From Trichosphaerium sp. ATCC 40318 (taxonomy: Eukaryota > Protista > Tubulinea): DNA of 64,000 nucleotides. Below, piece after piece: positions 28,815 to 47,257 of the stretch (the stretch's first letter is position 1; the number at the start of each line of letters is the position of its first letter). Where the stretch lies: assembly GCA_038496445.1 (NCBI GenBank), contig JALMLS010000440.1, forward strand, positions 248,001-312,000, in the 5' to 3' direction. A model generated the notes under the pieces. The model was not told the origin of the DNA. It did no database searches and worked only from the letters and a program-made list of their open reading frames with translations. A program made the position numbers and the translations under genes.

Positions 28815-29738
28815 TTAATTCCAGACTCTGATAAACTTGATACCAGCTGCTTCAACATGCTCTTGTATAATATTTGAATTAAAAGTGGCTTCAATGACTT
28901 TAAGAGATTGCATGTGTTTAAAAAAGTCAGTGTTAATACCAGTACAATGAACCAGCTTAAGGCGTTTAAGGTTACCCAAATTCTTAAACCCTGATCCTGT
29001 TACATTGTAACATTCATACAAGACAAGCCATGTTACATTAGTAAATGCCTTAATTCCTTCATCACTGACTAAGTGAGATCCATGTGAGTTTGGTTCTTTC
29101 AATACAATTGTAGAAGCATTACTAAGGTGGTGAAGATATTCATCTTTTGGGTTTCTTACAATGATGTTATGTACATCTTTAAGTGCTTTAACTCCCTCTG
29201 CAGTTATCCCGAACTTATCACCATTAAAGCTAATATAACGAACACCTGTAAGTGCTTTTAATGAGACATCTGTTAATGATGTATATTCCAAGCTGATTGT
29301 GTGAATATCATTTTTTTGAACTAATGCAAGAATGCCTTTATCTGTAATCTTCGTGTCATCAAGTAGTATTGTATGTACTCCTGATAACTCTTTAAGGCAT
29401 TCATCTGTTACTTTGGTATAAGAAAGCTTTATATTGTGAACACCATCAAGACAAGCCATATCATCAGGTGACACCTGCAAACCCCACACACTTCGAATTT
29501 TTGTGTTTTTAAGCAATGGGCTGCCCTTTAAAACTTGACAATCTGCTGAGGACTGTAATTCGATGCTTACAAAGCCGAGATTATGTCGAATGATGTTGTT
29601 AAAGAGATGGGAGGTTGTGGTGGCGCTAATACGTTGCTTTTTGGGTAAATACCGTAAGATACAAGTTAACGTCTCTGCTGGTAGCGTGGTAATGCTAGCG
29701 ACGCGCTGTGATGACGATTGTTGCTGTTTGTTTTCCAT
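28815..29738 (-). CDS. F-box / LRR protein (intronless)
   Basis: ITTLPAETLTCILRYL F-box, followed by GVHxIxLxxTxxTD LRRs; uninterrupted 307-aa ORF. Confidence 0.9.
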   Translation of the reverse strand: MENKQQQSSSQRVASITTLPAETLTCILRYLPKKQRISATTTSHLFNNIIRHNLGFVSIELQSSADCQVLKGSPLLKNTKIRSVWGLQVSPDDMACLDGVHNIKLSYTKVTDECLKELSGVHTILLDDTKITDKGILALVQKNDIHTISLEYTSLTDVSLKALTGVRYISFNGDKFGITAEGVKALKDVHNIIVRNPKDEYLHHLSNASTIVLKEPNSHGSHLVSDEGIKAFTNVTWLVLYECYNVTGSGFKNLGNLKRLKLVHCTGINTDFFKHMQSLKVIEATFNSNIIQEHVEAAGIKFIRVWN

Positions 29739-30049
29739 AACGTTGTTTGCGATGCCTATCGTGCTTGTAGCTGTTGATCACTAACGACACAAGTGGTTCA
29801 ACCGTGCTGTAGCAAAAACAGACTTTGAGAATTTGGAAGGAACTTGACCGAGTAGAGAACTTCTCTATGAAATTACACTACTTTTTGTTTTTTTTCGAAT
29901 TTTCCATGTTGTATTAACACCTACCATTTCCATACCTCTTATTTTGTATGCCATGATCTAGAAGGGTAAGCATAATATTTTTTGCTGGTTAAAACGAACT
30001 ACATCCTGACAGTGACTTAACAAATTCTAAAAATTGTTTGTTTATTACT

Positions 30050-33000
30050 TTACAAAATAAACGATTGAACTTCTGTTTCAGGTGTCGTTATCAATACATC
30101 ATCAGTGTTAAGTACTGTACGAAGCTGGTCTTGTTCGTATCTATTCTTTTTCTTACGCTGAGCATACCATATTGGTATAGGCATCAGAATGAGAAGAAGA
30201 CCAAGAACACAATATGCAATGATCAAGTAAACTAAAGTGAAAATAAAGTAAGCTGGTAATGTTCGCTTTGTGTTTGAGTTTCAGCGAACCTTTTGTTGTC
30301 AGGAATGTGGTATTCGCACAAGCGGGTTGCCTGTCGTGTCTCCAGAACCATATACTACCAAGCATCTGCAAGGTAATTCGTTAGAGGCAAAAGAGAACGA
30401 AGGTAACATAAACAGAAAAAAAGAGGAATAGTGATTCCGAAACTCGTTTCACGTTCTTTTCTCCACGGTTTGTGAGTGGCTTATTTACGTACCAACCAAA
30501 CAAGAGCAGATGCAAAGCTCAGCGCAAAAGTGATGACTGATATCCTAATTAAAATAAGACTTTGTACGAGTTACAAAACAAATAAAGTTGCCGATTTGAT
30601 TCAAGTCATACCAGCCTTTGTGCATTCTTCCATCTTCTGATTTTTTGCGCCATAGCCGTGGATAATACACGCATCCAAGAGATAATCCCATGAGTAATCC
30701 CATAACAACTTGTATGATACCAGTCACGAGCTGTTAAAGAAAAGGTGTAAGTTCAAAGCACTAAAAAGCATTTTTTTGTGTTTGTACCAGAAATAGTTCT
30801 AATGGTGAACAGCTTGGTTGATATTCTGCAAATACATAGAAAAACCATGCGGCTGATCCAAGTAGTATAGCAAGTATTATCAAATAAGTTATCAACACAC
30901 AACATGTTTGTGCTTTCGAATCTTCAAAAAAACTGTTAGTGGTTTTTTTTGGTTACACTTTGGGTTCTTTTGACGTACTCTTGTCATCTTGTAGTTCTAT
31001 AGAATCCATATCTTTAAATGGTTTAACATCATAAATAGCCAAATCAGCAGTATCAAGCTCTATAGGTAGCTTTGGGTACTTGACACGACCTTTTTTGTCT
31101 AATTTGCTGTCTATAAACAAACATGTCAGAAAAAGCACATAAAAAACACGTGGAAACAACTTGAGGTTTCAAAGTAGTTAAGTAGAAACTAATAAATATC
31201 CGAGTGATGTTGTTTAAAGATTTACAGGAAGATAAAATGTTTTGAGGAGATGATAGAAGAATAGTTTTTTTTTTCATTGTACCTTTTGATACAAGAACAC
31301 TTATTGGCTCTAGTGTGTTATCACCATGTTTGATTACAATCTCATGATCTCCAAATACCTTAGGCTTAAATGTACAACGCATTGTACGATCTTCGCCTTT
31401 AAGAGAGTATTTATCGCTATGCTCTATTTCGTTCTTTGAAGGATCCAAAACTGTGACCTAAAACTTCATCAACAAAAGAGTCTCGTTGACGTAATTCAGG
31501 TTCTAGAAATCTTAACAAGTTTCGTACATGTACATCTCTTGAACTTGATTCTCCTAGTTCAATAACGAAGTAATGAGGTGCTGGCTTCGTTTTTGGTTTC
31601 TCTTCTTGAACAATTGTTAAAAAGAACGAACTAAATACTAGTGTAGCATCACATACCTTCACGATCGAATACAGAGAGTTCCTTTTCTATTGTTTCTCCT
31701 TCATATTCTAAGCTTAAAATATATTTTCCTTGGCTATCTGGAGTGAAAGATAATACAACATCATCACCACTCTTAGAGACCTTAAACAAGTTATTCTCAA
31801 ATTATTCTCGCATCTTGCTACAATTTTTTGGGACCTACCTTAGCTGGGTGGACTTGACCATCTTCGGTCTTTACTAAAGCGGTGACTTCTGATGCGTCAA
31901 TATCGTCTAAAGGTACAATGTCGCCAAAATCGACCGTTTGGCTGACTTCTTGCTCAGCGACCCAAATCTTACTCCCAACCAGTTTAATAGACGGTTCTAG
32001 CTCCTGCTCTGTTTCCGATGGTTCTAAACAAACTATGAGTAAGAGCAAGAGATTTTTTCTTGGTACCTGGCATAGGATGTACTGTAACATCTTCCTTAAG
32101 TAATAGTTCTCCTTTGTAAGAAACAGTAAGTGGTAAAACACCAACAGATTTTGGATGGAACGTCAATCCAACTTGTCCAACTCTATCACTAAAGAGAAGC
32201 ATTAGGATTGAACCACGAGCACAAGGAATACATATCAAGAAGTCGGTTCAAACAAAAGAGTAGCATACGTAGGAGATATAGAAGGATTTGTGATGAGAGG
32301 AATTTCAATGTTGACATTTTCTATTTCAACTGGAAGCACTTCTCCTGTTTTTCTGTTTGTAAATGATATTATTCCATTAACAACAGATCCAGCTACTACA
32401 TCTTCAGGTATACTAGAAGACGCTGTTGCGACTATAAAAAGTAGGTGAGTTTGTGAGCAAAAGCAAAGAGTAAAAGACAGTATGAGAAGAATACAAGAAA
32501 AGTTTTTGCGCGTGGCCTTGGTGGTTAAAAACATTGCTTGAGTCGTACCTATTGTTGGCTTCTTAACTTGAACTTCTGCTGTAACAAGTGGTACACCTTT
32601 TAGAGTTACTGCTAGCTTCCCTTGGCCAGGATTATTCGGAGTTACTTCGAAAGGCACTTTTCCAGTGATGATAGATTCTTCGACTTTACACTCTTGGTCA
32701 TTAAGGAATACTTTAATATCAGCTGCGCTGACATCCATAGCTAATCCAGTCTCACCATCGTTGATAGTAAGAAGACCCTTTTCATCATCTTTGGCTGTAA
32801 GAATTGGAAAACCTGTTGATGGATTTGTTCGATCTGAAGCGAAAGATATCGATGCTTGAGGCATAGGTGGTATTGTTACTTTTGATGTATCAGTCTTTAC
32901 GATATCTCCATCATACTCAAAAGTTACTATCATATCACCTTGTTTCTCTGGTGTTATTGAAACGCTTATTTTGTTATCGGTTGGGACATCAATAAGAATC

Positions 33001-36000
33001 TTTGATTGAGGTTCTGTTGTCACATTTAATTTCTCTGCATCTATTTCGTGAGGTGATTTGTTGATTTCTCTGTGAATACAAGATCTGCAACGTATGTTTT
33101 ACCAACAGTCATCTTATCAGGCAGCGTCGAAGTGACAGAGAGCTCTAAACGCAAAAGTTAAAAATCAAACAAAACAATTTTTGTTTCTTCAGCACCTGTT
33201 TTTGCGTCAACTGCGAATGCTTGAGGCTCAACTTTAGCACCATCATATGTAATGGATACATGGTGAGTTCCTGGGTTAGGAGCTACGAAATCTACTGTAT
33301 CGTTTGTCAGAGTTGTTGGTGTTTCTGGAATGGATATAGCCAGTTTTGATAAATCTATTTTACAAGGTTTTCCGTTCTCTGAGTTTGTTGCTGAAACCTT
33401 TGCAGAAACTTTAGAACCTGTAATAACATCCTCTGGAATATCTAGGGTTATATTTGGTACTAAACAATTGCGTTAGATAAGCTGTACTTCAAAGAAAAGG
33501 TAACCATAATTCGTACATTGAAGCACATCGACATCTTGTTCGAGGATGTTATTCCCTCCGCTTTCTACGATCATCTTCTGTTTACCAGGATTTGTAGGTT
33601 CAAGATCAATAGTGAATGTACCAGGTACATCACCAACAGATAGTTGTACATCATTACCAGAAAGCGAACAAGAAATATCATCCAAGTCTAAAGGTATTGG
33701 TTCTTTTGTCTCTTCATCACTTATTGCAAGTTTTGCATTATACTTATTCTTGGCATACAACCGCTCTGGTAGCTCTACAGAAGCAACAATGACTACATAC
33801 GAATAAGTTAAATATGTCATAATAAATCACGTGATAATTTTTTTAGTTCGTACCTTGTGGTGATTTTGATTCAAAATCCTTTGAAAGAACTTCATCTCCA
33901 TCATAAGAAATGACAAGTTTGTTTGGACCAACTTTTTCTGTAAAAATTTTCAAAGGTACTTCATGAGGAACATCAGAAGATCCAATATCTACATCACCAT
34001 CTTCAAGTGTTGCTTTAACTTTCTCTTTATCAATAGGATATCCTTCATCTGATACTGAGTCCTTCGCCTTTAATACAACCTCAAGAGGAGTACCAGCTAG
34101 ATTATCTGGTACTTCGCACGTGAAAGTTGGTTTTGATTTAGGCGACACGTCTAGTTTGCATGACGCCATTTCTTTATCTTCGTAGTTTACAACAATATCC
34201 ACAGGACCTTCGTCACTTGGCGTTAATGAGACGGAAACCATACCAGGCTTGTCTGGGATTGGTTCTACTTTGACAGGAGTGCCGTTTGAAGTTGTAACTG
34301 ATAGTTTGGACATGTCAATTGGCATTGGATCTCCAGATGCGTTATCTGTTAAAGAAAAGTTTGTAGAGAGTTCTGAACCTGCTTTTGGCTCTTCTGGGAT
34401 ATCTTGGAATGCACCCAAAGGCTCTAAAGGAGAATTAAGTCAGAAAAGTGTTTTTGAGTTCAACGAAAACAAGCTTTCATCGTGTTGGCACTTGCCTTGT
34501 TTGTTGTTTATCTGAATCTCCTTTGACAGTATTTCTTCATTGTCTAGAGTTACCTTTATCGTTGATTTACCAGGTTCGTCAACAGAGAAAGAAACTGGGA
34601 AAGTTCCAAGAGCATCAGAGTCACTAACGTCTATTGTACCATTCTCGATTGTGACATTAATCTTATCTTTTGCAACATCCATAGGTTCCGACTTTATGGC
34701 GTCTACTACGAATAAAGTAGCATTAACAGTATCACCAACTATCAAGTCTTCAGGTATGTCTTCGATTTTAGCGACTGGTTCTTAGTGAGAAAGAATTAAG
34801 TTAACAATAAAGATCTAGTTAAGAAAAGTTTTTCTTGATGGCGTTATCTTTACCTTTTTTGGCTTCGAACGTTATATCCTTGGTACCAATAACAGTTGCT
34901 TCATAGAATACTTCAAGCTTTTTGGTACCATCATTAGTGAATGGCAAAGGTATTTTGAATTCTGAAGGGTTATCGGTTGGAGTACATTCGACATCTTCAT
35001 CGCCAAGTGTGGCTTTGATGTCATCTGATTCCAATCCTGGGAACGGTTCTGTTGATTCTTCATCAACAACTTTGACGATAGCTTCAGCATCTGTGCCTTC
35101 AGCAACTGTATCTGGTGCTGTAAACTCGGCAACAGGAACTACAAATGAGTTAGTACAAATAAAGTTCGAATTGTACCCTTACCTTTCTTTGATACAACAG
35201 GGATTTCTTGAGATAGCACATCAGCATCGTTGTATTTTGCAGAGATTGTGAGAGGTCCAACAGATTCAGGAGTGAACGAGATTGATACTTCATTTGGATG
35301 ATCATCAACAGACTCAACTGTGACTGGAACATCACCAGAAAGAGTGACATTCAAACTATCTTTATCAATGTCCATTGGATCGCCTGATTCTTTGTCTGTC
35401 ATTTGGAGTGTCAGTTGAGATTCGGAACCAGCAATGATCTCATCAGGAGCATCATCAATTGTCATGATTGGTACTAAAATTAACATTAACAAAGTTTGCG
35501 GAAAACAAATGAGATGGTTGTACCTTGTTTCTTTTTAGCATCGAGCTCCTTTGACAATATTTCTTCACCATCATAAGTCACTACTAGTTTGTTGCTGTCT
35601 TCATCAGGGGTGAATGTGAAAGGAACTTGTCCAAGTGTATCAGAATCACCAACTTCAACAGGTTTGTCACCAACAGTGACAGCGAGTTTGTCTTTCTCGA
35701 CTTCCATTGGCGATTCTGTGACTGAATCTACAACCTTCAATGTTGCTTCAACAGGTTCACCAATAGTAAGGGTTTCAGGTAAGCCTTCACAAGTTGCAGA
35801 TGGAGCTTGAGTGATTGATTAGTAAAATAAGAATAAGTACAGTCCTAGGTTACCTTTCTTGTGTTCAAAGTTGATATCTTTTTTACCGATGATGGTTGCT
35901 TCATAGAGAACTGATAGCGTCTTTTTACCTTCTTCAGTGTACTTTAAAGGTATTTTGAATTCTGAAGGATTATCTGTTGGGGTGCAATCGACATCTTCAT

Positions 36001-39000
36001 CACCAAGAGTGGCTTTAATGTCATCTGACGCCAAACCTTCAAATGGTTCTTTGGATTCTTCATCAAGCACTTTGACGATCGCTTCAGACTCTATGCCTTC
36101 AACAACTGTATCTGGTGCTGCAAACTCGGCAACAGGAACTACAAACAGGGTTATTGAAAATTATGGGTTGATGGGAGCTGTAGATGATACCTTTCTTTGA
36201 TACAACAGGTATTTCTTGAGATAACACATCAACGTCGTTGTATTTAGCGGATATGGTGAGAGGCCCAACAGATTCAGGAGTGAACGAGATTGATACTTGA
36301 TTTGGATGATCATCAACAGACTCGACTGTGACTGGTGTATCATCAGAAAGAGATACACTCAAACTATCCTTATCGATGTCTATTGGATCACCTGACTCTT
36401 TGTCTGTCATTTGAAGTGTCAGTTGAGACTCGGAGCCAGCAATGATCTCATCAGGAGCATCATCAATTGTAACGGTTGGCACTAAAATCACGTAAGGGCT
36501 AGAAATCCCCACAGTTCTATGTACCTTGTTTTGGCTTCACTTCAAAGTCTTTTGACAATACCTCTTCACCATCATACGTAACTGTGAGCTTGTTATCTCC
36601 TGCTTCTTCGACAGTGAAAGTGACAGGTGCTTGTCCGAGAGTTTCAGAATCGCCAACTTCAACTGTTCCTTTGTCAACACTAACATCAAGTTTGTAGTTC
36701 TCAATTGGCATTGGAGTATCTGTTACTGAGTCCTTTAGGCTAATTACGACTTTATTAGGCTCTGAGACTATAACATCTTCAGGTAAGTTGTCACAAGAAG
36801 CCACAGGTACTAGGTGTATGTTATGTTTGGTCGGTGTAATTTTTTAAGTACCTTTCTTGTGTTCGAAGTTTACATCTTTTGTTCCAATAACTGTAGCCTC
36901 GTAGAGCACTGATAGCGTTTGTTTGCCTTCTTCAGTGTACTTCAAAGGTATTTTGAACTCTGAGGGGTTATTGGTTGGAGTACATTCGACATCTTCATCA
37001 CCAAGTGTAGCCTTGATATCATCTGATTCCAATCCTGCAAATGGTTCTTTTGATTCTTCATCGAGAACTTTCACGATCGCTTCAGACTCTGTACCTTCAA
37101 CGACTGCGTCTGGTACTGTGAATTCGGTAACAGGAACTAAATAATATTAAACTACAGTATACGTTGTAAACGGTATTAGTGCACCTTTCTTTGATACAAC
37201 AGGAATCTCTTGAGATAGCACATCAGCATCATTGTATTTTGCGGATATTGTAAGAGGTCCAACAGATTCAGGAGTGAATGAGATTGAGACTTCATTTGGA
37301 TGATCATCAACAGACTCAACTGTGACTGGAACATCACCAGAAACAGTAACACTCAAACTATCGTTATCAATGTCCATTGGATCGCCTGATTCCTTGTCTG
37401 TCATTTGGAGTGTCAGTTGTGACTCGGAACCAGCGATGATCTCATCAGGAGCATCATCAATTGTCATGGTTGGTACTAAAATTAACATTAACAAAGTTTG
37501 CGGAAAACAAGTGAGATGCTTGTACCTTGTTTCTTTTTAGCTTCAATCTCCTTTGACAATATTTCTTCACCATCATAAGTTGCTGTTAACTTACTATTAC
37601 CTGGTTCATCAATCGTAACAGTGATAGGAAGTTGTCCAAGTGTATCAGAATCACCAACTTCAACAGGTTTGTCACCAACAGTGACAGCGAGTTTGTCTTT
37701 CTCGACTTCCATTGGCGATTCTGTGACTGAATCTACAACATTTAACGTTGCTTCAACAGGTTCACCGACTGTGAAGACTTCAGGCAATCCTTCGCATGTT
37801 GCAGAAGGTACTAAAGAAATACCATTAATTTTTTCTGCCGTTAACTATCGTATTGTACCTTTCTTGTGTTCAAAGTCTACATCTTTGGTGCCGATGACTG
37901 TAGCCTCATAAAACACTGATAGGGTCTGTTTACCTTCTTCAGTGTACTTTAAAGGTATTTTGAACTCTGAAGGGTTATCGGTTGGAGTACACTCGATGTC
38001 TTCATCACCAAGTGTGGCTTTGATATCATCTGGACCCAAACCTTCAAATGCTTCCTTTGATTCTTCATCAAGAACTTTCACGATGGCGTCAGCATCTGCG
38101 CCTTCAACAACTGTATCTGGTGCTGTAAACTCGGCGACAGGAACTAAAAGGGGTTATTGAAAATTATGGGTTGATAGGTGCTGTGGGTGATACCTTTCTT
38201 TGATACAACAGGTATTTCTTGAGATAACACATCAGCATCATTATATTTTGCGGATATGGTGAGAGGCCCAACAGACTCAGGAGTGAACGAGATTGATACT
38301 TCATTTGGATGATCATCAACAGACTCAACTGTGACTGGAACATCACCAGAAAGAGATACACTCAAACTATCTTTATCAATGTCCATTGGATCGCCTGATT
38401 CCTTATCTGTCATTTGGAGTGTAAGTTGAGACTCGGAACCAGCGATGATCTCATCAGGAGCATCATCAATTGTCATGGTTGGCACTAAAAATAAGTTACA
38501 ATGAAGTCATGTACAAATATGTTCTTACCTTGTTCTGGGTTTGCTTCAAAGGCTTTTGATAATATCTCCTCACCATCGTAAGTAACTGTTAGCTTGTTAT
38601 CGCCCGGTTCATCAATCGTAAAAGTGACAGGAACTTCTCCAAGCGTTTCAGAGTCACCAACTTCAACATTTCCAGAATCAACAGTCACAACAAGTTTATC
38701 TTTCTCGACTTCTAATGGTGACCCAGATACTGTGTCAATAACTTTAACAACAGATTCAATAGGTTGACCAACAATTATATCTTGAGGTAACTCGCATTCA
38801 GCACCAGGAACTAAGAGTGAAGAAAGTGAGTCGAGACGAGAAGTGAAAACCCAAAAAAAATCGAAAAAAAGTTTACCTTTCTTTGCTTCGACATGTATGT
38901 CCTTTGATCCAATTTCATTGTCTTGATAGCTTACAGAAAGCTTCTTATCGCCAGGTTCATTCAGTGGAATACTGACAGTAAACTCCCCAGGGTTATCTGA

Positions 39001-42000
39001 AGGCTCACAAGCTAGATTTTCAGCATCAAGTAGAACTTTGACTTCAGCGGCAGGAATATCCGAAAGTGGCTCATCTGTTGCTGCATCCTTGATAGCAATA
39101 GCTACAATAGCATCTGTTCCTTCTACTAGTTCATCTGGTAGTACAATACTAGCCGTAGGTACTAAAGAAAATGAATTAAAACTCAAACAAGAAGTCGTTC
39201 TTACCTTTCTTAGCAACAACTTTGAGTTCTTTGTTGATAATATCTTCACCGTTGTACTTCGCAGTAATAGTTGTATCACCAACTTTATCAGGCTTGAAAG
39301 ATATCTCTACTTTGCTTGGTTCGCCTTCAACAGGGTCAACAGTAACATCGCTACCATCAGATGTTTCAACGCTCAAGTTTTCTTTGTCAATCTCGATCGC
39401 ATCACCAGACTCCTTGTCTGTGACTTGCATCGTAATTTTAACATCTCCTCCTTCAGTCACTTCTTCAGGACAATCTTCAAAAGCTCCAACAGGGACTAAA
39501 GGAGAAACTTGTTAACAACGAAGACTTGATTTAAGTGAAACTTTTTGAGGTACCCTGTTTCTTCTTTGATGCGATGTCGGTTGATAGAATTTCTTCGCCA
39601 TCATAAGTAGCTTTGAGATTGTTGTCACCTGCTTCATCGATTGTTACAGTGATAGGTACTTCTCCAAGTGTGTCAGAGTCACCGACTTCGACATTTCCGT
39701 TATCAACAGTGACAGCGAGCTTGTCTTTGTCTACTTCCATTGGAGTGTTATCAACTGAATCTACAACCTTCAATGTCGCTTCAAAAGGTTCACCAGCAAG
39801 GATGTCTTCTGGTACGCCTTCACATGTTGCTGATGGAACTTTCTTATGCTTGAAGTCTATGTCTTTTGTACCGATGACGGTTGCCTCATAGAGCACTGAT
39901 AGTGTCTGGTTACCTTCTTCAGTGTATTTCAAAGGTATTTTGAACTCTGAAGGGTTATCGGTTGGAGTACATTCGACGTCTTCATCACCAAGAGTGGCTT
40001 TAATATCATCTGACTCTAATCCTGCAAATGGTTCTTTGGATTCTTCATCGAGCACTTTAACGACAGCTTCAGCATCAGTGCCTTCAACAACTGTATCTGG
40101 TACTGTGAACTCGGCAACAGGAACTACATAAAACTGTCAGTAGCTGTTTTAAAGAGTTAAGTAGTTCTTACCTTTCTTTGCGACAACAGGAATCTCTTGA
40201 GACAACACATCAGCATCATTGTATTTTGCAGATATTGTTAGAGGCCCAACAGAGTCAGGAGTGAACGAGATTGATACTTCATTTGGATGGTCATCAACAG
40301 ATTCGACTGTGACTGGAACATCACCAGAAACAGTGACACTCAAATTATCTTTATCAATGTCCATTGGATCGCCTGACTCTTTATCTGTCATTTGAAGTGT
40401 TAGTTGTGATTCTGAACCAGCGATGATCTCATCAGGTGGATCATCTATCGATAGTGTTGGTACTAAAACGAAGTTAGTGGATCAAAGTATTGTTTGTTTA
40501 TAGAATACCTTTCTTTACTTTAGCTTCGATATCATGAGAAAGTATATCTTCGCCATCATAAGTAGCTTTGAGACTATTATCACCTGCTTCATCGATTGTC
40601 ACTGTGATAGGTACTTCTCCAAGTGTGTCAGAGTCACCAACTTCAACATTTCCGTTATCAACAGTGACAGCAAGCTTGTCTTTGTCTACTTCCATTGGAG
40701 TGTTGTCAACTGAATCTACAACCTTCAATGTCGCTTCAAAAGGTTCACCAGCAAGAATGTCTTCAGGTACGCCTTCACATGTTGCAGAAGGAACTTTCTT
40801 GTGCTTGAAATCTACATCGTTTGTGCCGATGACGGTTGCTTCGTAGAGTACTGATAGTGTTTGGTTACCTTCTTCAGTGTATTTCAAAGGTATTTTGAAC
40901 TCTGAAGGGTTATCTGTTGGAGTACATTCGACATCTTCATCACCAAGTGTGGCTTTAATATCATCTGACTCTAATCCTGGGAACGGCTCTTTTGATTCTT
41001 CATCAAGCACTTTAACGATCGCTTCAGCATCTGCGCCTTCAACAACTGTATCAGGTACTGTAAACTCGGCGACAGGAACTACACAATAATATTAGTAAGG
41101 TTTCTCCAACTGTAGATGTTTACCTTTCTTTGCTACAACAGGTATGTCTTGAGATAGCACATCAGTATCGTTGTATTTTGCGGATATTGTGAGAGGTCCG
41201 ACAGATTCAGGAGTGAATGAGATTGAGACTTCATTTGGATGATCGTCAACAGACTCAACTGTGACTGGAACATCACCAGAAACAGTGACATTCAAACTGT
41301 CTTTATCAATATCCATTGGATCGCCTGACTCTTTATCTGTCATTTGCAAGGTTAACTGTGACTCAGAACCAGCGATGATCTCATCAGGTGGATCATCAAT
41401 CGATAGAGTAGGGACTGTGGTTTTAGTTAGTAAAGTTTTTTTTTTTAGGCTTTTACCTTTCTTTGCTTTTGCTTCTATATCATGGGACAGTATATCTTCG
41501 CCATCATAAGTAGCTTTGAGATTGTTATCACCTGCTTCATCGATTGTTACAGTGATAGGCACTTCTCCAAGTGTGTCAGAGTCACCAACTTCAACATTTC
41601 CGTTATCAACAGTGACAGCGAGCTTGTCTTTGTCTACTTCCATTGGAGTGTTGTCAACGGAATCTACAACCTTCAATGTCGCTTCAAAAGGTTCACCAGC
41701 AAGAATGTCTTCTGGTACGCCTTCACATGTTGCTGATGGAGCTTTCTTGTGTTTGAAGTCTACATCTTTGGTACCGATGACGGTTGCTTCGTAGAGTACT
41801 GATAGTGTTTGGTTACCTTCTTCAGTGTATTTCAAAGGTATTTTGAACTCTGAAGGGTTATCGGTTGGAGTACATTCGACATCTTCATCACCAAGTGTGG
41901 CTTTAATATCATCTGATTCCAATCCTTCAAATGGTTCTTTGGATTCTTCATCAAGTACTTTGACGATTGCTTCAGCATCAGTGCCTTCAACGACTGAATC

Positions 42001-45000
42001 AGGTACTGTAAATTCGGCAACAGGAACTAAAAATAATATTATGTTAAGTGTTTTAAGAATGACAATATGCGTTACCTTTTTTTGCGACAACAGGAATCTC
42101 TTGAGATAATACATCAGCATCGTTGTATTTTGCAGATATTGTTAGAGGTCCAACAGATTCAGGAGTGAATGAGATTGATACTTCATTTGGATGTTCGTCA
42201 ACAGACTCAACTGTGACTGGCGTATCACCAGAAACAGTGACACTCAAATTATCTTTATCGATGTCCATTGGATCGCCTGATTCTTTGTCTGTCATTTGGA
42301 GTGTCAGTTGAGACTCGGAACCAGCGATGATCTCATCTGGCATATCATCAATTGAAACAGTCGGCACTTAACAGCGTAAGTAAGTTTAACAACAGATCAT
42401 TTTATGGTTACCTTGCTTTGGCTTCGCTTGGAACTCTTTAGACATAATTTCCTCGCCATCATAAGTAGCTTTGAGATTATTGTCACCTGCTTCATCAACA
42501 GTAACAGTGAAAGGAACTTGTCCAAGCGTTTCAGAGTCACCGACTTCAACATTTCCTTTATCAACAGTGACAGCGAGCTTATCTTTCTCCACTTCCATTG
42601 GAGACCCTGTCACTTTATCGATAACATCCATGCTCACGCTTACAGGTTCGCCAACAATGACATCTTCTGGTATCTCACATGTGGCGGAAGGCTCTGTTTT
42701 AACAGAAAAGTCAACTTTGGTAAACAAACCAAGATTCCGAGTACCTTTTTTGTGTTCAATAGATAAGTCAGCTTCGCCAATGACTTTATCATCATATGAT
42801 ACAGATAACTTCTTATCACCTGGTTCATCGTTCTTGAGATCGATTTTGAACTCACCAGGAGTATCAGAAGGCTTGCAATCAAGATTTTCATCTCCAAGTG
42901 TTGCTTTAATTTTAGCAGGATCAATGTCATCCATCACCTCTTGTGTTTCTGCGTCTTTTATTGATACTGTAACAGAAGCGTCTTCGCCTTGTTTTAGGAC
43001 ATCAGGAAGCTTAATATCTGCAGTAGGAACTATACAAAGTAAGTCATCAACACAACTTTTTTATCTCTTTATCTAGCTTTTAATTGTGTACCTCTCTTTG
43101 GCTTAACTTCAACTGTATCGTTCAATATTTCTTCTCCGTCGTATGTAGCAACTATATTCTTACTTCCAGGATCATCAAAGGTTATTTTTGCTGCTACTTT
43201 ACTAGAAGAGTCACCATCTTCAAAATCGACATCGTTATCACCAACTTTCAGTTTTAGCTTGTCTTTGTCGATTTCCATATCGTCTCCGGATACTTCATCA
43301 ATGAGACGAAATCCAAGAGGTATCTCAGAACCTGCTTCGATGTCTTCAGGTTTATCATCAACCAAGAGTTTAGGCACTTGAACAGACAGTAAGAAAAACA
43401 TCTTCAAAAAGCATGAACAGAGTTACCTTTTTTAGCGTCCACTGTGAATTCCTGAGAAGCAACTTCTTCATTATTTATAGATACCTTGAGTGTGGCTTTA
43501 CATGGTTCTTCAAAAGATACTGAAATAGGCACTTTGCCTACTTCATCAGAGTCGCCAATATCTAGCTTCCCGTTTTCAAGAGTAACTTCAAAGTTATCTT
43601 TATCAACCTCCATAGGATCTCCAGTGACAGAATCTGAAACGCTAATCGTTGCCTTATATTCTTCTCCAGTAACTATATCGTCTGGTATATCGAATCGTGC
43701 GACAGGTACTAGTTAAATTTATCAGCAACAAATCCACAAGAAAGTAGGTTTTTACCTTTTTTGTGATCAACAGAGAACTCTTTTGTGCCGATCTCTTTAC
43801 CATCGTATGTGATTGAAAGTTTTTTATCGCCTGGATCATTAAAGTTGAGAGGTAAGGAGAACTCTCCAGGGTTATCAGAGGGTTGAACTTCAATATCTTT
43901 TCCATCCAAAGTAACTTTTACTTTGGAAATATCAAAGTCTTCAATATCCTCGTTAGATTCCTCATCTTTAACTGTAAACTTCAACTCTGAATCATCACCT
44001 TGTGTGAGAGTATCGGGTACAGTAACTTCTGCTTTAGGGACTAAAATACAAGATCAATAAACGCGAGAGCAAAAAACGGAGAAAAAGAACAAATTTCTTA
44101 GTTTCTTTGGTACCTTGCTTCTTCGCTACAGCGATATCTTCGTTTAGTATTTCATCGTCATCATATTTGACAACCAATTTCGTATCACCAGGTTCAGTTG
44201 GTTTGAAAGTGAGCACAACTTTTCCTGGTTCATCTGAAGGCTCAATTTGTAGGTCTTCAGCAGGAACGTTTACATTTAATTTATCAATATCAATATCAAG
44301 AGGTTCTCCAGAGCCTTTGTCTTTTACTTGTACAACCATACGAACTGGTTCTCCAGCTAAAGGCTTCTCTGGCTTCTCTACAACATTACCAACAGGTTCT
44401 AGAAGTAATGAGTAAGAAGAGAATGCGCTAAACTTTTTTGTTCACCTTTTTTAGCTTCAACATCTAGCTCAGATTTGCCGATTACTTGGCCATCGTAAGA
44501 CACTTCCAATGGAACCTTTCCTCCTTTATCCAAATTGAGAGGTATTTTAAACTCTCCTGGGACATCAGAAGGCTCACATTGGATATCTTTACCATCAAGA
44601 GTAACTTTAATCTTTGACGGATCAAAATCTTCCAAAGGTTCTGAAGTATTTGCGTCTTTGACATTGAATGTTACTGAACCATCTTGACCTTGAGTCAACG
44701 AATCTGGAACATCAAATGACGCTGTAGGCTCTAAAATACGAAAACGTATGAGAACGATAACTTCGTTAAAAATATGAAACACGTGATATTTTTTTTGTTT
44801 ACCTGGCTCAGGTTGAACGTCTATTGTTTCTTTTGCTATTGGCTTTCCATCATAAGATATAGTCACTGTCTCAGCTCCTGGATTCTCTATTTCGAAAGGT
44901 ATTTTAAATTCACCAGGTACATCAGTAGGTTCAATCTTAACTTCTCTATCTCCAATAGAAACTGTCAACTTTTCACTTTTTTCAAATGGTTTTCCAGTGT

Positions 45001-47257
45001 TAGGGTTTGTGAGGTTTACTTTTATCTCCTGTGGTGTACCAGTTATAAACTCTTTGGGTGGATCGCTTATTTTAGCGAGAGGTTCTGAAGGTAAAAGTTA
45101 ATAGATATCAAATACAAGCACAAAGATTGAGTTACAAAGAAATCCTTTCGTACGTGTCTCAGGTACTGTAAATGTTGAAGATAACATCTCATCATCTCCG
45201 TAATTAACTTTAATACTAGACTCTCCGCTTTCTTGAGGAACAAATTCAATAGCGTATTCGCCTTCGCCTTCTAAAGGTAGTATCTTTACTTCTCCTTTTG
45301 AAGGTACGCTAACTTTGATTTTATCCAAGTCTGGTTTGAAAGGTTTGCCATCTTCCTTGTTTGCAAACTTGACAACGCATTTTACAGGAGAATCTTCATT
45401 AAGATCCTCAGGTAAGGCTTCCAGCGTAGCAGAAGGCACTAGTCAAACATTAAAAAATAGCAAAACGTTGAAGAATAAGATACAAAAGAAGTCGGATTCC
45501 GTGCCTATTTTAGGTGCTGGCGGTTCAGCTTTAGGTTCTTCTGGAGCCTTTTCTGTTTCTTTTTCTTCTTTGGAATCATCTCCTCCTTCGTCAGCTTGAA
45601 CCTCAGCGTTTTTAAAGTAAGCCAAATATGTAGCCATAGCCAAATCATCGGGATGATCTACGATATCTTCTGGCTGTAAAATACTTGGTATGCCAAACTT
45701 ATTCTTGGCAATTTCCATGGCCCTATAGTAAATATTAGTTAACAACGACCACTTGTCTCCTCAGAGAAAATATATAGAGCCATTGCGAGATAGACAAAGC
45801 GACACAAAAGTTCAACAAAAAAAATAACAAAACCAAGTACCGAGCAACATCTTTGTACGCATCTCCCTAGTGTTGTTATTAGTGAATAAAATATATTAAC
45901 GCGTTTGGTTACCGTCATTCCAGACAACGGACATGACCCTTTTTGTAAACTATCTACTAGCGCTGTAAGAGCTTTAGCATCACTCCATCTAATAAAACAA
46001 TTAGAAAATAAAGCTACTTTTTTGGATGAATAAAGCGCACCCTTTTTTGAAGCTAGTCACTTCAACAGGATAATCTAAAAATTATTAACACATGCTACGT
46101 ATAGTAGTGTTTATTTTTTAACCTTTGATCTGTTCTTTGATCCATCTGTAATTTTGTTAGAGGCGAAAAAATTAACGACGTTTTTTTTTTCTTTTCAAAA
46201 CACGTACGCAAGCAATGCGTCTTTGACTTGTTTCGCATTTTTTCCTTTACCTCCCTACGTCAATCATTAATATTTAAAATATCTCGCGTTCCATCTTTAA
46301 AAAATATGGACGTACTTTTGACACGTGATAACGAAGTATAAGAGTCCTGTAGATGTCAGAAAATTTAACAATAAAAACGTGTTAAACAAAAAAACTCCTC
46401 ATTACCAGATTAACCCAAGAACAAGACTTTCCTTGCCGTCATGAATATCCTCTCCTCCTATATTCACAGTACGAATACCTTGATCCTCAATGAACTTGAG
46501 AGCCTAGTTTACGCATCAGGAAAATATAGTTGGAACGCGGTACAGCCACAAAACGTTTTTGTACAATTTTTTTCGGAGTTTTTTTATTCAAAAACAAAAA
46601 CGCCGATCGCGTGGTTCTTGACGCTCAGTAGATTATGATACCCTTTACTAAGAATGGACAACAAAATAAAGAAAAAAAATATCACGTGATACAAAAAAAA
46701 AGATTGTACCACTAAAAAACGCCAAGACATCAAAAACAAGCCAAAGAAGGCGTGACATGTCGAAATAAAACAAAAACAAAAACACAAAAAAAAAAACTCT
46801 TCACCGTACAATGTTTATATTCTCAATCATCTGAAACTTCATACGTGGCTTCTTACTATACCTTGGAAGAGGCTTATCTGATATTTCCTAAAAGATATCG
46901 GTAACGGACTTGACAGTTTTATCAAAGAAGCACTGTCAAGATAACAAGGTACTTACGCCTAGAAGCTCTAATAATTTAACACCACTTTTTAAATCTTCTA
47001 CCAAATCTTTTATAGCAACATCTTCACCTAGCTCGCTCATATGGGTGTTACACCATCCTTTAAACGCCTAAAAAAAAAGGTTTAAACAATCACGTGAGTA
47101 TCCACGAGGTGGAACAAAAAAAAGATCGATAACGTAGTTAGGAAAGCGGGAAACTGTTTAATACGATCCATAATGGAAGCGCGGTAAAAAACGCGGTTTA
47201 AAGAATACTTACGTTCTTCTGGGATCGTATCCAAGCATTTGGATCTTTTTGCGCCAT
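30050..47257 (-). CDS. Giant filamin-like protein: CH1-CH2 actin-binding domain, about 40 Ig-like modules, C-terminal 4-TM domain
   Basis: WIRSQKN|AFKGWCNTHM...DLKSGVKLLELL...NIGGEDIHDGKESLVLGLIW|TLILRYH (CH1). WSDAKALTALVD...FGIPSILQPEDIVDHPDDLAMATYLAYF (CH2). About 95-aa acidic modules, mostly one per phase-1 exon. In-frame canonical splices lead into four hydrophobic helices and a stop at 30050. One apparent 1-nt frameshift near 33060. Confidence 0.85.
34130..44041 (-). repeat. Three-module (about 1 kb period) coding super-repeat inside the filamin-like gene
   Basis: Recurring order X (DDIKATLGDEDVECTPTDNPSEFKIPL), Y (KDKLAVTV...VEVGDSDTLG), Z (PDEIIAGSESQLTLQMTDKESGDP). About ten cycles, near-identical in the core 34850-42370. 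Confidence 0.9.

Follow-up and report, generated by a model that had tools for sequence, protein, structure and literature searches.

In a window of 64,000 nucleotides (nt) from the amoeba Trichosphaerium sp. ATCC 40318 (assembly GCA_038496445.1, contig JALMLS010000440.1, positions 248,001 to 312,000 of the forward strand), the minus strand carries, from 47257 down to 30050 in window coordinates, one gene whose predicted product combines a tandem CH actin-binding head, a very long rod of filamin-type Ig modules and four C-terminal membrane helices. Filamins are textbook soluble crosslinkers, which reach membranes only via partners such as integrins. We consider it likely that this single gene encodes a filamin of another kind, namely an integral-membrane, actin-linked tether. 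Spliced transcript contigs connect the rod to the anchor, the reading frame is maintained across every joint, and substitutions between close relatives preserve the encoded protein.

The window is AT-rich (GC 0.33-0.41), and its minus strand from 47257 to 30050 is marked by a long run of stop-free segments of ∼95 amino acids that share a start, 'VP..', and an end, '..KK'. For the gene model, three approaches were combined. From 35261 down, the model follows joints present in transcript contigs. The rod between 45438 and 35183 was obtained by a shortest-path search over GT..AG introns, and the splice sites of the head were curated by hand to give a complete CH1-CH2 pair once its exons were joined; upstream of 35261, both head and rod consist of predicted exons. 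The coding region (30050..47257, minus strand) starts with an ATG at 47257 and ends with a TAA at 30052-30050, and the final model predicts a protein of 486 kDa with an isoelectric point of 4.2. The introns chosen between 45438 and 35183 are each 42-73 nt long and lie in phase 1 between '..KK' and 'VP..'. This uniform phase between modules yields a single unbroken frame from ATG to stop. A preliminary description of the stretch had proposed one gene with a CH1-CH2 head, an Ig rod and a four-helix C-terminal tail, and all of these elements were recovered on the minus strand at the positions it gave. Its estimate of about 40 modules and 4,500 amino acids stood as regards the design, the figures being refined to 42 modules, 4,496 amino acids and 56 exons.

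Contigs of four public runs were aligned to 29800-35700. Such contigs document the presence of a joint, not its absence, as rare variants drop out of them. The longest spliced contigs, one per run, measure 3,916, 2,194, 1,747 and 563 nt, with shorter pieces in every run, and the contigs connect the 3' third of the rod, ∼1,290 codons, to every exon of the tail. The joints from rod to anchor and within the anchor are, on the minus strand, 31283|31110, 30979|30921, 30788|30730, 30611|30543, 30493|30365 and 30290|30231; all are GT..AG, and the frame is maintained across each of them. The joint between rod and linker exon, 31283|31110, is bridged by three contigs with 132 letters on the shorter side and by a fourth with 45, and both this joint and 30979|30921 are present in four runs. 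These two correspond exactly to the joins anticipated in the preliminary description, VSK|DSKLDKK for the former and DDK|NSKAQT for the latter (intron GTACGT...TTGAAG, 57 nt). It had also been considered that the membrane exons might form a separate gene, or that the rod transcript might end upstream of 31110. Both possibilities are contradicted, because the spliced contigs bridge the rod-linker joint as well as five joints within the membrane domain. Rod and anchor are thus one transcription unit. Following the stop codon, an AATAAA is found at 30046-30041, and the contig from run X4 ends 14 nt beyond it, at 30027 (feature 30027..30046, minus strand). Beyond 33146, at its other end, this contig continues into what we take to be the complement of a SMART cDNA primer, and it was therefore regarded as cDNA. 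Its end at 33146 would represent either 5' truncation of the cDNA or an internal transcription start giving a short form with five Ig modules and the anchor.

The anchor is encoded by six short exons on the minus strand. A linker exon of 44 amino acids (30979..31110), delimited by the two joints found in four runs, leads from the last Ig module to the first predicted helix. Helix 1 and outer loop 1 (YQPSC) are located at 30788..30921, where transcript joints, a hydropathy peak of 2.55 and three out of three synonymous substitutions coincide. Transcripts, hydropathy and substitutions likewise support helix 2 with its basic, presumably cytosolic loop (PRLWRKKSEDGRMHKG) at 30612..30730. Transcripts and hydropathy define both helix 3 with outer loop 2 (RQPAC, with an NTT sequon), divided over two exons (30544-30493 and 30365-30290; together 30290..30544), and the last exon (30053..30231), which holds helix 4 and a predicted cytosolic tail of 38 amino acids starting YAQRKKKNR. 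Four hydropathy peaks of 2.2-2.7 fall within the last 190 amino acids, compared with a maximum of 1.42 elsewhere, and no other peak above 1.6 occurs in the whole protein.

The distribution of lysine and arginine (K+R) was used to evaluate the orientation of these helices. Counts amount to 2 in the segment before helix 1, 0 in loop 1 (AEYQPSCSPLE), 6 in loop 2 (PRLWRKKSEDGRMHKG), 3 in loop 3 (RHDRQPACANTTFLTTK, the loop with the NTT sequon) and 5 at the start of the tail (YAQRKKKNRYEQDQL), or 13 on the presumed cytosolic segments versus 3 on the outer loops. Given this distribution, a hydrophilic N-terminus without signal peptide, a CH head of cytosolic type and an even number of helices, the protein fits a topology in which both termini are cytosolic and loops 1 and 3 lie outside. 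This is the orientation that had been proposed from the outset, and the single Cys reported for each presumed outer loop is indeed present in the sequence. The two hairpins (30290-30921) are alike in having a helical LGS.WF motif and a QP.C motif in their outer loops. Their local score is 40 versus 27 ± 5.5 for shuffles, 2.6% of which reach 40, and the resemblance is suggestive only of an internal duplication. Exon-wise Pfam searches of the anchor gave nothing above threshold; the best match, L_HMGIC_fpl on one exon (E 0.024, 15.3 bits versus a cut-off of 25.2), aligns helix 2 with the later part of the profile. Among atlas look-alikes of single anchor exons, generic single-pass proteins only were obtained (≤0.80). 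TMEM272, to which the anchor had initially been likened, occurs in the literature only as the name of an uncharacterised gene.

To follow substitutions in the gene, the window was compared with contigs from X4 and from runs X2 and X8, the latter two representing a very close relative. Among the 40 best-supported differences, 36 are synonymous and four non-synonymous in the frame of the model; in the linker and membrane exons, all eight differences are synonymous. These proportions support the reading frame and, as judged from them, the anchor is maintained as a protein, under purifying selection.

The rod was delineated with a hidden Markov model (HMM) built from 21 single-module exons, which identifies 42 back-to-back modules of ∼95 amino acids from residue 271 to ∼4260. 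Gaps between modules are at most 21 amino acids after removal of four stop-free introns described below. Pfam Filamin (PF00630) matches the middle and 3' segments (E 1.4e-8 and 4.9e-6), and a profile of 27 modules matches filamin A, B and C in the PDB. One module modelled with AlphaFold (predicted local distance difference test score 89.6) has seven strands, and its best PDB fold matches are the filamin domains of Lin-41 and TRIM3, FLNA Ig10 and rod domains 5-6 of the Dictyostelium gelation factor. Atlas look-alikes of a three-module stretch include filamin, GEX2 and invasin Ig clusters. Pfam, PDB profile and fold accordingly agree on a rod of filamin/ABP280-type Ig repeats, as found in the filamin family. 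With 856 Asp and Glu residues (21%) versus 350 Lys and Arg, the rod carries a net charge of about −506.

Three regions can be distinguished along the rod, all on the minus strand. Modules 1-9 (42412..45438) are mutually divergent and were assigned by matches to the module HMM, by Pfam Filamin (E 4.9e-6) and by predicted inter-module introns that are all in phase 1. Modules 10-32 (34854..42366) form a three-module super-repeat with units of ∼950-1,010 nt, broken by the divergent modules 19-21. Module identity in this region is ∼70% at offsets of 3, 6 and 9 versus ∼29% otherwise, and modules of the A type (97 amino acids) share up to 96% protein identity. Since whole units are 75-87% identical in DNA while their introns have mostly diverged, the duplications appear not to be very recent, the coding parts having been kept. 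One unit pair (38484 and 36481) retains a similar intron. Tandem Repeats Finder returned no rows, the period of the super-repeat being above its limit. Modules 33-42 (31283..34774) are divergent and split by extra introns, with every joint present in transcript contigs. The last of them is degenerate, with a Pfam Filamin match confined to its second half (E 0.0011, last rod exon, 31284-31457). Between two rod exons, a GC-AG intron at 34424-34495 (donor GCAAGT) is bridged by contigs of two runs.

Two CH domains make up the head. Exons 1-5 (46316..47257, minus strand) contain the start codon and CH1, and exons 6-10 (45484..46254, minus strand) contain CH2 and the acidic Glu/Lys/Pro linker that connects it to the rod. 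Matches to Pfam CH (PF00307) were obtained for exon 2 (47067-46957; E 8.6e-6, profile 7-42) and exon 4 (46503-46408; E 0.0048, profile 68-100) in CH1, and exon 10 (45751-45485; E 5.3e-5, profile 67-106) in the second CH domain. Sequence matches in the PDB comprise CH1 of alpha-actinins and CH2 of spectrin, filamin-B and alpha-actinin. Pfam and PDB thus agree on an N-terminal tandem CH actin-binding domain, the other hallmark of the filamin family. CH2 also includes two micro-exons (23 and 34 nt), whose placement follows the CH2 pattern of filamins. The assembled head, with stretches such as LGLIWTLILRY, is presumably close to the filamin actin-binding domain, which we note as a lead.

Four predicted inter-module introns, 44731-44802, 42694-42744, 41415-41456 and 38811-38876, are stop-free multiples of three (72, 51, 42 and 66 nt, respectively). 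A model of 4,573 amino acids in which they are coding was rejected on account of their GTAAA/GTACT donors, their AG acceptors and their position at the same module boundary and in the same phase. The four segments are predicted to be introns and were excluded from the final model. Retention of any of them would keep the frame and add 14-24 residues, and their number is about that expected by chance. At 33059-33062 (minus strand) a base is missing from the window within a coding exon, giving an X in the model. One extra letter in each of X1, X2 and X4, all the transcript sources covering the site, restores the frame, and the codon reads ACC, AGC or AAC. The assembly has probably dropped a polymorphic base here, so that the gene is not considered a pseudogene. 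Directly downstream of the 3' end of the gene, a single-exon open reading frame (ORF) of 307 amino acids (28815-29738, minus strand) has weak F-box and leucine-rich-repeat matches.

Several points weigh against the interpretation as a membrane-integral filamin. The link between head and rod is predicted from an open frame, a 45-nt intron and uniform intron phase, the transcripts having covered 29800-35700. Contigs cannot prove a single molecule that spans the whole gene, and isoforms that skip or read through anchor exons may be compatible with them. The anchor, a domain split over six short exons, is without a match to any known family in exon-by-exon searches, and no relative was found outside a very close species. 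With the 44-amino-acid exon of helix 1, a search of protein representatives gave no matches, the query being too short. Searches for homologous proteins yielded no candidates with the last exon, 57 candidates with the two-module exon 33855-34421 and 2,152 with the three-module stretch 41125-42024, none of them significant; the length window of this search cannot reach a relative of 4,500 amino acids. A metagenome scan with the last exon produced 600 pattern matches, none confirmed, and exact look-ups of two plain ORFs of the window found them not on record. As the queries were short exons and length filtering was applied, these blank results say little about the occurrence of the design elsewhere.

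Against this background, alternative explanations for the rod-anchor combination were weighed. The union could be false, if the model or chimeric contigs had merged two neighbouring genes, one for a soluble filamin and one for a small four-helix protein. Such an artefact would be in keeping with the intron that precedes the linker exon, which at 172 nt is longer than any other in the 3' half, and with the start of the X4 cDNA inside the rod, at 33146. We nevertheless regard it as very improbable. Joint 31283|31110 is spanned by independent contigs, from up to four studies, whose shorter arms measure 45 to 132 letters, and the frame is kept over all joints. Moreover, a start context is lacking in the linker exon, and no contig starts between rod and anchor. 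Alternatively, the anchor could be optional, with a soluble giant filamin as the main product and a minor splice variant as the membrane form. An in-frame stop is located just inside intron 30978-30922, such that read-through would end the protein after eight more codons (…DDKSTSKEPKV), and a rare unspliced form could be dropped from contigs. However, the contigs covering this site are spliced in all four runs, the AATAAA and the contig end are reached by the spliced form only, and the membrane exons are under purifying selection with eight of eight differences synonymous, which makes a mainly soluble product unlikely.

Two further alternatives accept the joined protein and differ in where it would operate. 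It may serve in organelle positioning, as a functional analogue of nesprins and interaptin in the nuclear envelope, the endoplasmic reticulum or the contractile-vacuole membrane rather than in the plasma membrane. A CH-CH head, a long rod and a C-terminal anchor follow the logic of nesprins (PMC3296292), Dictyostelium interaptin associates with internal membranes (PMC2148174), and loops bearing a Cys and an NTT sequon would suit a lumen equally well. On the other hand, the single helix and short lumenal tail of the KASH type are lacking, the four helices are predicted to leave the C-terminus in the cytosol, and the sequence points to no particular membrane. We take this role seriously without leaning towards it, and rate the plasma membrane and an internal membrane as about equally likely locations. 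As to an extracellular Ig array, that is a surface adhesin resembling GEX2- or invasin-type arrays with the four helices as its stalk, the presence of GEX2 and invasin Ig clusters among the atlas look-alikes is in its favour. Such an arrangement is hardly credible, however, in view of the hydrophilic N-terminus without signal peptide, the cytosolic nature of CH-CH actin-binding domains, the implausible export of 4,300 amino acids ahead of the first helix, and a charge distribution that places the rod side in the cytosol.

For the membrane-integral filamin tether, the following mode of action can be proposed. Binding to F-actin is established for tandem CH domains of this type and would be expected of the N-terminal head. 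Filamin Ig rods are flexible, force-bearing chains in which each module is ∼3.5-4 nm long; with ∼42 modules, the strongly acidic cytosolic rod would have a contour length of ∼150 nm. The strong negative charge should hold the rod in an extended state, at a distance from the acidic inner leaflet. The C-terminal four-helix bundle would be inserted in the membrane, with the rod side and the short basic tail facing the cytosol and the two short loops, each with one Cys and one with an N-glycosylation sequon, facing the outside or a lumen. In this way, membrane and actin filaments would be linked directly, with no need for the adaptor contacts of ordinary filamins, and the protein would probably act between membrane and actin cortex as a long permanent tether, a spacer or an extensible spring. 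This tether or spring function we infer from the architecture. More tentatively, the amoeba lineage might possess a small family of half-megadalton filamins, wired to the membrane by an unclassified four-helix domain of two similar hairpins, which set the distance between membrane and cortex and their mechanical coupling without an adaptor. Such a family, for which we see a possible rather than a probable case, would constitute a third independent solution beside the spectrin- and coiled-coil-based giants.

The individual parts are known, as is the logic of CH head, rod and anchor; what is new is the four-helix anchor domain as such, and its fusion to an Ig rod. No membrane-integral filamin was found in the full-text literature, the coverage of which was incomplete and was not complemented by a database search by architecture. 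If a filamin occurs in nature with an integral anchor built in, it would illustrate how gene fusion makes a link to the membrane permanent, and amoeboid cells would offer, in a single protein, a simple system for force transfer through an Ig spring from membrane to cortex. The gene further draws attention to a four-helix domain that has no family assignment. The claim is limited to one lineage, and localisation and mechanics enter it as predictions.

The closest counterparts of the head and rod are the ordinary filamins, which consist of an actin-binding domain and Ig repeats; human FLNA/B/C, C. elegans FLN-1/2 and Dictyostelium ABP-120 share with the amoeba protein the tandem CH head and the filamin-type Ig rod (PMC3143143). 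They have 6 to 24 modules versus 42 in the amoeba protein, in which the rod is, moreover, very acidic and contains a three-module super-repeat. Whereas filamins end in a free dimerising repeat, are soluble and reach membranes only by binding receptor tails, the amoeba protein ends in four hydrophobic helices encoded by the same transcript and thereby departs from the soluble family, which has no membrane-spanning segments. The anchor bears a general likeness to MARVEL, claudin/PMP22/LHFPL, MS4A and TMEM272-like proteins, with ∼150 amino acids, four helices, cytosolic ends and short outer loops. Claudin-type proteins differ by a long Cys-rich first loop that is absent from the amoeba anchor, and exon-wise searches gave no significant match to any of these small four-helix families.

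In overall design, the protein resembles CH-headed giants with a C-terminal anchor that tie membranes to actin, such as nesprin-1; giant nesprin-1/2, ANC-1 and MSP-300 likewise begin with a CH-CH head, continue as a very long rod and end in a membrane anchor (PMC3296292). In those KASH proteins the rod is built of spectrin repeats and the anchor is one helix with a short lumenal KASH peptide, in contrast to a rod tiled by 42 Ig modules, four helices and a 38-amino-acid basic/acidic tail that is predicted to be cytosolic. No KASH-like ending was seen on reading the protein sequence. By these features, the amoeba protein ranks as a nesprin analogue and not as a KASH member. Given the absence of a KASH-type tail and a rod of Ig rather than spectrin type, the earlier characterization as a nesprin-like design built from Ig modules of the filamin kind is a fair one. 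Dictyostelium interaptin (abpD), an amoebozoan protein of the alpha-actinin superfamily, likewise combines a CH-CH head with a C-terminal membrane-association segment (PMC2148174), but its rod is a coiled coil, it has one hydrophobic stretch only, and it is much smaller. To this short list of CH-headed, membrane-anchored giants, comprising nesprins and interaptin, the amoeba protein would add a case with an Ig rod.

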